A stretch of 63,040 nt of DNA, filler included, from Reticulomyxa filosa (taxonomy: Eukaryota > Protista > Foraminifera), in the NCBI GenBank assembly GCA_000512085.1. It is 23 parts of 23 records of this genome, joined end to end, with 100 filler letters (N's around TTAATTAATTAA, not from the genome) between each part and the next. Parts side by side here need not be neighbours in the genome. Positions count along the whole stretch, not along the records: positions 59,743 to 63,040 come from ASPP01006971.1; 22 more parts are not named here. One strand, 5' to 3'. The position numbers and the translations under genes are program-made. This document shows, piece by piece, positions 59,743-63,040 of this stretch. The notes beneath the pieces were generated by a model. That model searched no databases. It was not told the origin of the DNA and saw nothing but the letters and a program-made list of their open reading frames with translations. Every line of letters starts with the position of its first letter. The first letter of the stretch is position 1.

Positions 59743-60240
59743 GTTTTACTTTTGTTACTATTATTCTTCTCATTACTCTTGCTATTGCTATTGCTATTGC
59801 TATTGCTATTGCTACTGCTATTGCTGCTACTTTTGCTACTATTATTACTTTCAAGTGTCATTGATCTTGACAGCGGTTGGTCTGTCACTGCCACTGCACT
59901 CATGTTGCTTTCCGCTGTTTCTTTTTTGCGCATCACGTCTTTGATCCACACCAAGATCTGCTTGTGCAAACGCATGCATGACCGCACATCACTTTGCGAC
60001 GACAGCGATACTAGAAACACAATGTCGCCGTCGTAGTCGTACCGAATTGCCACCCCTTTTTGCAACGATCCTCCCATAAACGCGCCGTACACATGGCGGA
60101 ATGGACAGCTACCTCCTTGTGCTTTGCTCTCTTCCAACAGCTCCTTCACAAACTCATTCGCTCGATCATACGCTCGCACTCGCTCGCTTTCTGTTAATGG
60201 CAGTTCTTTTATCATTTTCGCCAATTGCTTTTCTCTCCTT

Positions 60241-60277
<37 letters not shown>

Positions 60278-60498
60278 ACGTAATATATATACATACATAA
60301 GTATTTATGTGTGTGTGTATATGTATATATTTATGTATATGTATATCTGTTTTTTTCTTCCTCCCTCTAAATAAACTTTTTTTTTCCCCCTTCACTCCAA
60401 ATCACATTTGCAATACCTTTGCCCTTTTTTGGCTTAAATTCCGTTGTACACATAAAACATTGCTGGTTTACTAATAGCATGGCTGAACATCTATCACA
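59743..60498 (-). CDS. 2'-5' oligoadenylate synthetase-like (OAS/cGAS/CD-NTase superfamily) nucleotidyltransferase with upstream C4 zinc-finger exon, partial
   Basis: Spine helix followed by AFMGGSLQKGVAIRYDYDGDIVFLVS (GGS at 60074..60066, DGD at 60032..60024). Exon 60498..60417 (CDRC-x9-CFMC) splices in phase to 60241. Confidence 0.75.
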
Positions 60499-61053
60499 CT
60501 TTTTTTTTTTTTTTTAATTCATTCACCATCACCCCACCCCCCTCTCCTCTGTTATTAATGACCTTTTATTGTTGGTACGTATATCAAAAAATATATTGAC
60601 AAATAGCGCTATGTATACGCATATACATGTATATATTTATTTATACATGTATACAGTACACAGTCACAAAGCGCAAAAAAAAAAAACAGAGGACAAAACC
60701 AAACTATGGTAAACGTCGCAAATTTCAAATTCTCTCCTCGGAGATTGCCCCAACTTTTCTCTGAACTAGACCGTAACATTGTCTTTCAGATTTTGAAAAA
60801 TTTTAAGACGAAAAAAAAAAAAAGAACAAGCAAAAGTTTCAAAAAAGAAACAGAGAAAAGCCCCTTTCTCTCTTTAGAACAGGAAGAAAAAAATTTAAAA
60901 AGACAGAAAAACCTTGCAAATAAGGATTGGATTTTAAGATTTCTTTTAGGGAGAAAGAATTAAAAACAGAGCGTATTCTGATAACAAAAGAACAGTTCCA
61001 AAAAAAACAAAACAAAAAAACAACTCTTTGGACTGGATTAATTATCAGTCTAA

Positions 61054-61864
61054 ATTGTATCTCTTTTGTTGCCATTGGGGGCAATGACAACGACACCACA
61101 AGTGAAAAAAGCCACAAAAGAAACTAATGCAGATGTGGATGATTTAGATGCATTAATCCGCGAAACACAAAGCGTGTGGAAAACACTGGCAAGCTCTGGA
61201 ATAGAGTCAGTCGACAAGGATGTTGACTCTGGTATTTTGAAGCCCTCTAAGAGACAACATGCAAGTGACACCTTGTTGTCACATAAATAAAAAGATTTAT
61301 ATTTATATTTCTGATGTAAATAAGTTGTAAAGCATCTGCACAATATTTGATAACTGTTTTTTATTTATTTATTTTATGTGCATGTGGGACAATTGCAGTG
61401 ATGTCACACCCTCAAATCTCCACGCCCAGCATTGCGAAAGCAGCTTCAGCAGGACAGACGCAGTCGGATGGGTTGGATGAGTTACACAAACAAATGCCCG
61501 TGTGGACCCCGACAGAGCACAGTTTTCAAATCCAAACTCAAAAAAAAAAAAAAAAATCAAACATAAAATGTTGTAATGAATGGGTTTTATTTGATTTGAT
61601 TTGATTTGATTTGATTTGTATTGTATTGTATGACTGGACATTGGAGACTGTGTTTCACAGATGTCCGCGTTATCTTCTCCGTTCCGAAGCAAGCCCACGA
61701 CGAAGGACGTTTTTAGCGACGCGTCCGCGCTGGAACAATCCACCGAAGTGAAGCCCTTGTCACCTAATGTCGGCAAGCCCTCTTTATCCAATGACAACGA
61801 TATCAAACTCCACGATCAAGTTATCACTACCTTTTCATTTCTCAAACACAATACATACACATAT

Positions 61865-61908
<44 letters not shown>

Positions 61909-62968
61909 ATATGTATATATGTATTTGAATGGACAGCCTCAGGATGAACTGTCTTTATCCGACATTTTGAACAATACTGCCACTGAGTTGTCTGTCCGAC
62001 ATAAAAGCAAGTTTCAATGCGATTTCAACAGTGACAATGACGACGACGACGACGACGATAATGATGATGATGACGACGATGATGACAATGATGACAGTTT
62101 GAACATAAACACTCCAAATGACAACAAAAGTGAGAATAAGAAGAAAATGGATGATATGAAAAAAGAGAAGAAGAAGAAGGAGGAGGAAGACACGACTCGA
62201 GGGAACATGTCTGGTGTATCTCCGACAGCCACGCCTGCATTTGATGACAAAGCGAAATCGACGGCGGATTGGAACGGCAATGACAACAATGAACCATTGC
62301 AATGGAGTGATGACATCAAACAAAGTACCGTGGCCAAGCACAAATGGAAACAAATGGCGGATTGCAAACAAGCGCAATGGAGTGAAGTGAACCATCGCTT
62401 GGCACGCTGTGGTTTCGACACGATCACTGCACAAAGCAATGACGATCCGTTACATTCCATTGCAAATGAGCTTTTACTCCTTCAAGTTTTTTTTTCCCTC
62501 CCCCTTTTTAATATATACATATATATATATTTTTTTTTTGAATGAATGTAATAATCCACAGACACTCAGCAAAGTGCTACAAGACTATGAGAAGATGCAA
62601 GAGGAGACAAAGAAAACCAATCCTCCATTCATTTGTGGAAACACAAATACCAGACGCAAACGCAAGCAATGTCGGCTTTGACAGCCAAACTGGCTCTACA
62701 TCAGCCGGACTCCAAGTTTCAACCTGGTTTTTTTTTTAAATTATTATTAAATAAAACAAAACTTCTTTTTCTTACTCCTTGCAAACAATAATTAAAAAAA
62801 AGGAGTGGTACAACGGACGCAGAAAAAGACTCGATGACAAACAAAGCGTCGGCAAATGAAAAGTCAAAGAAATTGGAGAAGCAGTTATCACAAGCAAAGC
62901 AAGAGATTCAACGCAAGGAGCAAGAGATATCAGATCTCAAACAAAAATGGGAAGCCTATTTAAAAGAA
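61054..62968 (+). CDS. Multi-exon coiled-coil protein, weakly CEP70-like, partial
   Basis: Exon-like ORFs; QWSEVNHRLARCGFDTI followed by coiled-coil exons. Confidence 0.4.
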
Positions 62969-63007
62969 GTTTGTGAATGCAAAAAAAATAAAATATATAT
63001 ATATATG

Positions 63008-63040
<33 letters not shown>

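Follow-up and report, generated by a model that had tools for sequence, protein, structure and literature searches.

It has been proposed that the last eukaryotic common ancestor already possessed OAS-type enzymes, and to our knowledge almost nothing is known of the ligands or signals of such enzymes outside animals. The locus described here lies at the end of a 63,040-nucleotide window, meaning the whole stretch of DNA that was analysed, from the foraminiferan Reticulomyxa filosa. It is located on the minus strand of a 3.3-kb contig, overlaps the deposited gene RFI_09223 and, judging from its sequence, is probably the 5' part of another member of a lineage-specific expansion of the OAS superfamily (CD-NTase class). 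The original prediction had read it as a finger-fused OAS-like nucleotidyltransferase (NTase) of a probable foraminiferan, and the organism was guessed correctly. The OAS-like part of that reading is upheld by a paralog profile and by structure comparison; the fusion is not, the evidence for it being a cysteine motif and a phase-compatible GT..AG pair.

The closest described systems come from an iterative search of EukProt for CD-NTases (Culbertson & Levin, PLoS Biol 2023; PMC10732462). Of 12 eukaryotic supergroups, 8 were reported to contain OAS-like proteins in that study, which also rooted eukaryotic OAS within clade C CD-NTases. Its supplementary sequences and trees include five R. filosa proteins, RFI_14454 (ETO22742.1) and RFI_15844 (ETO21360.1) among them; two of the five are identical to the proteins labelled P0004 and P0002 below. 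In the Figure 2 tree, the five form a clade with 100% support among eukaryotic sequences; its nearest neighbour is a Tetrabaena sequence, as sister (98), and dinoflagellate sequences join next (99). The R. filosa family is absent from the main-text discussion. A match to Pfam OAS1_C (PF10421) at the gathering threshold was the criterion applied there, and the available portion of the hmmscan table gives only marginal non-OAS matches for the R. filosa proteins, with no OAS1_C. An OAS-like family of R. filosa is thus already on record, and RFI_09223 is a further, truncated member of it. The finding is less novel than the original prediction assumed because the family sits in the published CD-NTase phylogeny. 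The sole other foraminiferan in the S2 File tree is Sorites sp., sister to Breviolum minutum within Symbiodiniaceae; this entry probably derives from the symbiont, a dinoflagellate, and not from the foraminiferan itself.

Positions 59743-63040 of the window are the exact reverse complement of contig ASPP01006971.1 (3298 bp; assembly GCA_000512085.1). A word search with the NTase fragment returned RFI_09223 of R. filosa as its sole match, and the NTase exon forms part of the NCBI entry 'hypothetical protein RFI_09223, partial' (216 aa). The features of the NTase part of the locus are as follows.

59849..60241, minus strand: predicted N-lobe exon of an OAS-superfamily NTase, 131 codons including a split Glu (translation, tblastn, alignments, AlphaFold2 model)
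60054..60074, minus strand: GGSLQKG, the putative G-S nucleotide-binding loop of Pol-beta-type NTases (translation, profile alignment)
60024..60032, minus strand: DGD (D71-G-D73 of the exon translation), the predicted first two metal-binding acidic residues (translation, alignments)
59743..59848, minus strand: (TTGCTA)n microsatellite to the contig end (Tandem Repeats Finder, TRF, 59772-59851)

The exon is predicted to encode, in order, a helix, a long spine helix, strand 1, the GGSxxKG loop, strand 2 with DGD, and a further helix. In the AlphaFold2 model of the fragment (predicted local distance difference test score, pLDDT, 71), these elements appear as helices at residues 18-42 and 86-110 and strands at 51-58 and 72-78. 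The loop follows the long N-terminal helix in the model and in the OAS1/OAS2 register, and DGD lies on strand 2 at the position of the DAD of OAS1; in the family profile alignment, GGSLQKG and DGD are in register with GGSSGKG...DAD. The peptides of both open reading frames (ORFs), NTase and finger, read exactly as first quoted, and the OAS1-like register of the loop and of the first two catalytic aspartates is confirmed by this alignment. In the RFI_09223 copy, the G-S loop retains its Ser and Lys, and both DGD aspartates are intact. The exon contains no stops and keeps every residue invariant in the family (N29, Y52, G53, G58, Q61 and L77). An in-frame ATG is found at 60215, nine codons inside the exon.

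Homology to the paralogs described below is confined, by tblastn, to 60227-59871 and occurs nowhere else in the piece. The alignment (A2) stops 3-5 residues short of the family FD(I/L)LVAF strand, which carries the third catalytic Asp, and tblastn with paralog N-termini and C-lobes added nothing outside that segment, with no C-lobe homology anywhere in the piece. The third-Asp strand and the helical C-lobe are absent because the contig ends in a microsatellite; the original prediction had likewise placed both beyond the contig end. The (TTGCTA)n stretch may open an intron, with its GT at 59848-59847, or may be read in frame as an insertion rich in Ser and Asn.

Considered in isolation, the fragment is difficult to classify. 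Comparison with hidden Markov models (HMMs) gave a divided result: Pfam and NCBIfam, including Pfam SMODS (PF18144), yielded no match, and the only models to touch the fragment were PADLOC oligonucleotide-cyclase models (E 4.6e-4 and 1.4e-3). OAS1_C at its gathering threshold is matched neither by the fragment nor by the paralogs. A single-sequence search of the PDB aligned residues 24-82 with residues 31-89 of OAS1 (1px5/4rwn) at E 0.4; this match was discarded as stand-alone support, chance matches to Fab light chains reaching E 0.15. The language-model neighbours of the fragment are bacterial SMODS/NTP_transf_2 clusters (0.92), and feature neighbours in SMODS clusters score 0.90-0.92 with 144-166 shared features, below the 170-feature guide. 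With the fragment model, the best Foldseek rows were CdnC, cGAS, NF45 and OAS1 (OAS1 at a query template modelling score, TMq, of 0.53). The top row, the clade C CD-NTase CdnC of E. coli MS115-1 (PDB 6u7b/6p80), shares 22% identity; its CBASS-type operon context, however, is absent from this eukaryotic contig, and neither this Foldseek match nor those to the PADLOC models are significant by themselves. From the fragment by itself, OAS is not distinguishable from cGAS, CD-NTase, DZF or terminal uridylyl transferase (TUTase). The OAS assignment of the RFI_09223 locus rests on family membership and not on the fragment, which by itself is almost unrecognisable.

The family was delimited with phmmer, run exhaustively against 1.8 billion representatives at E <= 1e-3. 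Besides the query, 11 proteins were found, eight of which are true relatives (E 6e-9 to 8e-4), all hypothetical proteins of R. filosa. The other three, metagenomic proteins from ENA (P0006, P0007 and P0010), were rejected as chance look-alikes: each consists of four or five tandem copies of a ~27-residue GAMLTGNTETGITVTYEDGDGTIDFVV-like unit that imitates the GGS..DGD stretch, and Pfam gives only a marginal Mrr_cat match. A word search with the family alignment returned four known members and was dominated by low-complexity words. With RFI_09223 included, the private expansion of R. filosa comprises at least 11 genes, many of whose members are partial models on short contigs. Motifs common to the aligned family are the ANEF..EL spine helix, VYG..GGSLQK, a (D/x)G(D/x) strand and the ILxWI helix; G58 and Q61 of the G-S loop are invariant. 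Full-length members add the motifs FD(I/L)LVAFTYE, LKxWKYY, IE(L/M)LCVYA and WPY.

RFI_14454 and RFI_15844 belong to the same species and family as RFI_09223. Over the N-lobe they share 39-52% identity with RFI_09223 (E 6e-9 to 3e-7), together with the ANEF..ELL spine helix, the VYG..GGSLQK loop, DGD and the ILxWI helix. Unlike RFI_09223, they are full length and possess the third Asp (FDILVAF) and the C-lobe. They also differ at the 5' end, both being encoded in a single exon from the ATG with a helical, non-finger N-terminus. In all four mapped paralog genes, the N-terminus and the N-lobe lie within one ATG-initiated exon, and the gene of RFI_14454 (P0004) is wholly intronless.

It is at the family level, through the full-length R. 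filosa paralogs, that the OAS-like assignment is supported, by profile and model alike. The family profile matched four PDB sequences at E <= 10, all of them OAS proteins: OAS2 at E 1e-4, with N-lobe and C-lobe stretches colinear, and three OAS1 sequences at about 0.06. In the profile alignment, the family GGSlQK...(s)egd corresponds to GGSSGKG...SDAD of OAS1, efdilvaf to FDVLPA/FEVLAAF, and LKaWk...iEllCVYA to LVKHWY...ALELLTVYA. The AlphaFold model of RFI_14454 (pLDDT 71.6; predicted template modelling score, pTM, 0.73) has OAS1, NF90/NF45, CdnC and cGAS as its top Foldseek rows, and structure comparison of the full-length paralog gives OAS1/OASL/OAS3 as the best match. The likeness to mammalian OAS1 (PDB 4rwn, 4ig8, 1px5) extends from the N-lobe/C-lobe architecture and the GGSxxKG...DxD register to the FD-L-AF third-Asp strand and the (L/I)E(L/M)L-VYA C-lobe helix of the paralogs. 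However, identity to OAS1 is only 15-20%, and the R. filosa family leaves Pfam OAS1_C unmatched.

RFI_09223 could alternatively belong to another Pol-beta NTase class, such as the poly(A) polymerases or TUTases, the CCA-adding enzymes, the DZF proteins NF45-NF90 or a MiD49/51-like pseudo-enzyme; the isolated fragment does not tell OAS from TUTase or DZF. The comparisons at family level make this very improbable. The profile matches OAS proteins alone in the PDB; in the structure comparison, the OAS rows are some 3 Z units ahead of VIA and show double the sequence identity; and the published tree groups the family with eukaryotic OAS-like sequences.

The paralogs differ in their catalytic residues. 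Among the eight aligned, the full triad (DGD plus the third Asp) is present only in P0002 and P0004; at least one catalytic acidic residue is replaced in the remaining six (P0003, P0005, P0008, P0009, P0011 and P0012). P0003 reads ESS and has lost DxD, and P0009 reads ESD, with only the second acidic position kept conservatively; both retain the third Asp, as do P0002 and P0004. In the others, DxD and the third Asp are lost wholly or partly, the third position being N or H: P0005 (NSA, N), P0008 and P0012 (CGY, H) and P0011 (IGD, N). These replacements suggest pseudo-enzyme paralogs, comparable to OASL and the inactive domains of OAS2 and OAS3.

If RFI_09223 is a functional member of this family, the exon at 60241-59849 would encode the spine helix of the N-terminus together with the front half of the catalytic N-lobe, with the GGSxxKG loop and the first two metal-binding aspartates intact, in contrast to several paralogs. 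If the complete protein works as OAS1 does, a nucleic-acid ligand would sit across its two lobes, on a face to which the spine helix also contributes. As in OAS1, cGAS and the CD-NTases, the three acidic residues would then align around two Mg2+ ions, closing the active site, and nucleoside triphosphates would be joined into an oligonucleotide, either 2'-5'-linked or cyclic, by which a separate effector would be switched on. The four-cysteine ORF upstream may or may not supply the first coding exon. We know of no effector acting downstream of OAS-type enzymes in Rhizaria.

The possibility that the locus is a decaying gene fragment must also be weighed, and here the deposited gene model is relevant.

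59750-60529, minus strand: NCBI model RFI_09223 (mapping of the deposited model)

The minus-strand frame is open from 60395 through to the contig end. At the 5' side, the model takes a (TGTATA)n microsatellite and a long homopolymer run rich in A for coding sequence and leaves out the four-cysteine ORF; at the 3' side, it shifts frame within the (TTGCTA)n repeat and thus stays open as far as the contig reaches. Because it reads through microsatellites, the model appears to be artefactual at either end.

On the pseudogene account, the locus would be a relic N-lobe flanked by expanded microsatellites, in a genome very rich in repeats, with no functional enzyme. Several observations speak for it and weigh against an active gene. 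Microsatellites or homopolymers adjoin both ends of the homologous segment, and no in-frame ATG lies upstream of the exon. An ATG-initiated ORF like those that hold the N-lobe in the four mapped paralog genes is absent here. The NCBI model remains open only by reading through repeats, and partial models on short contigs are, as noted above, common in the family. Such a locus also fits a decayed fragment. Against this stand 131 codons without a stop and the retention of every invariant residue; the G-S loop and DGD are kept here although they are lost in several apparently intact paralogs, and the truncation is accounted for by the contig end. The pseudogene account is considered the less likely one, though a real alternative, and a further member of the OAS-like expansion the better explanation.

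A separate question is whether a zinc finger precedes the NTase. The sequence elements involved are listed here.

60417..60498, minus strand: candidate exon upstream of the NTase exon, carrying CxxC-x9-CxxC (all cysteines within 60498-60448) followed by a Lys-rich tail (sequence reading)
60242..60416, minus strand: putative intron with a GTATTG donor, (TGTATA)n and an A-rich run (sequence, TRF 60239-60276 and 60316-60346)
60500..60529, minus strand: ATG of the NCBI model (60529-60527), followed by an A16 run (60515-60500) (sequence, TRF)

According to the original prediction, an exon missed by the ORF track joins the NTase exon by splicing in the correct phase, producing a finger-fused OAS-like sensor whose finger would bind RNA or ubiquitin and gate catalysis. 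The elements of this proposal are present in the DNA. The C-x2-C-x9-C-x2-C motif is found at 60498-60448 as C-D-R-C, nine residues and C-F-M-C, followed by the Lys-rich tail. Directly after this tail lies a GT donor (AAAG/GTATTG, exon end 60417), and the acceptor AG at 60243-60242 opens the next exon at 60241; joining 60417 to 60241 yields the split codon G/AA (Glu) and restores the NTase frame. A second phase-compatible acceptor would start the exon at 60232. The putative intron measures 175 nt and is composed of a microsatellite and an A-rich homopolymer run at 60239-60276 (about 38 nt, 94% pure), within which the acceptor AG lies; most of the putative intron is coding in the NCBI model. This composition resembles the introns of the neighbouring plus-strand gene, one of which, from a reading of the sequence, likewise ends in an A-run plus G. 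Phase compatibility, on the other hand, has a one-in-three prior.

The motif itself is rare by chance. A stop-free CxxC-x6-14-CxxC is seen a single time in the piece, where dinucleotide shuffles predict 0.05, and not at all in the four paralog loci (~30 kb, six frames), where tblastn with the finger gave only noise. Its reading frame opens after TAA at 60516-60514, has no ATG ahead of the first CxxC as assembled, and contains its first in-frame Met between the two CxxC knuckles. The ATG at 60529 is one nucleotide out of frame with the finger across the A16 homopolymer and would come into frame if the run were one A shorter. The finger frame therefore depends either on another exon further upstream or on a single-nucleotide change within the A16 run. 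From sequence reading alone, a short ATG-initiated ORF is seen at 60705-60779 (minus strand), with 25 codons to a GTTTGG at 60704, phase-compatible with AG/TGT at 60499/60498; it could in principle be a first exon upstream of the finger ORF.

The RanBP2/NZF label given to the finger is not borne out. The signature of this class is W-x-C-x2-C-x3-N-x6-C-x2-C. The ORF shares with it a pair of CxxC knuckles, with all four cysteines inside some 20 residues, but has x9 instead of x10 spacing, no Trp, and an Asn that is not at +4. Pfam PF00641 (Zn_ribbon_RanBP) aligns with single knuckles only (E 0.036), at 13.8 bits against a cutoff of 27. At most, the four-cysteine ORF would encode a generic zinc ribbon.

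Comparison with the paralogs also argues against the fusion. None of the ten with readable sequence (P0002, P0003, P0004, P0005, P0008, P0009, P0011, P0012, and EP00480 P006249 and P007837) carries an N-terminal Cys finger, and the four mapped genes have no intron before the N-lobe. A start at ATG 60215 would dispense with the finger and let the protein begin near the start of the OAS1 core; in the structure alignment, residue 49-50 of the paralog model corresponds to OAS1 residue 5. In the other direction, weak similarity to P0012 starts at QLAK, ahead of Met 60215. On balance, the finger fusion is doubtful, being somewhat disfavoured by the paralog comparison, and translation from the in-frame ATG at 60215 without a finger offers a simpler alternative.

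The remainder of the contig is occupied by two NCBI genes on the plus strand, encoding 157 aa (61084-61604) and 368 aa (61661-62968). The pattern of ORFs and GT..AG sites across 61084-62968 looks like one multi-exon gene.

61084-61268, 61404-61530, 61661-61825, 61937-62485, 62561-62728 and 62801-62965, plus strand: approximate exons of the neighbouring gene (ORFs and GT..AG)

The product is acidic, with an Asp-run at 62039-62096 and a coiled-coil-like tail, and the gene is divergently oriented relative to the NTase locus. All Pfam families fell below threshold for it; no domain can be recognised in its product, and nothing identifies it as an effector. As the sole neighbour, this domainless coiled-coil-like gene leaves contig ASPP01006971.1 without an effector candidate.

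The significance of the RFI_09223 locus itself depends on the finger. If the fusion were borne out, R. filosa would possess a zinc-ribbon-OAS fusion, an architecture not found in any paralog examined, in which the finger might give RNA or ubiquitin recognition to a nucleotide-signal synthase. Otherwise, the locus would be of little separate interest, representing a truncated, catalytically plausible N-lobe. The family has a wider meaning: because of its sizeable private expansion, R. filosa is a reasonable place for studying OAS signalling outside animals, together with pseudo-enzyme regulators.
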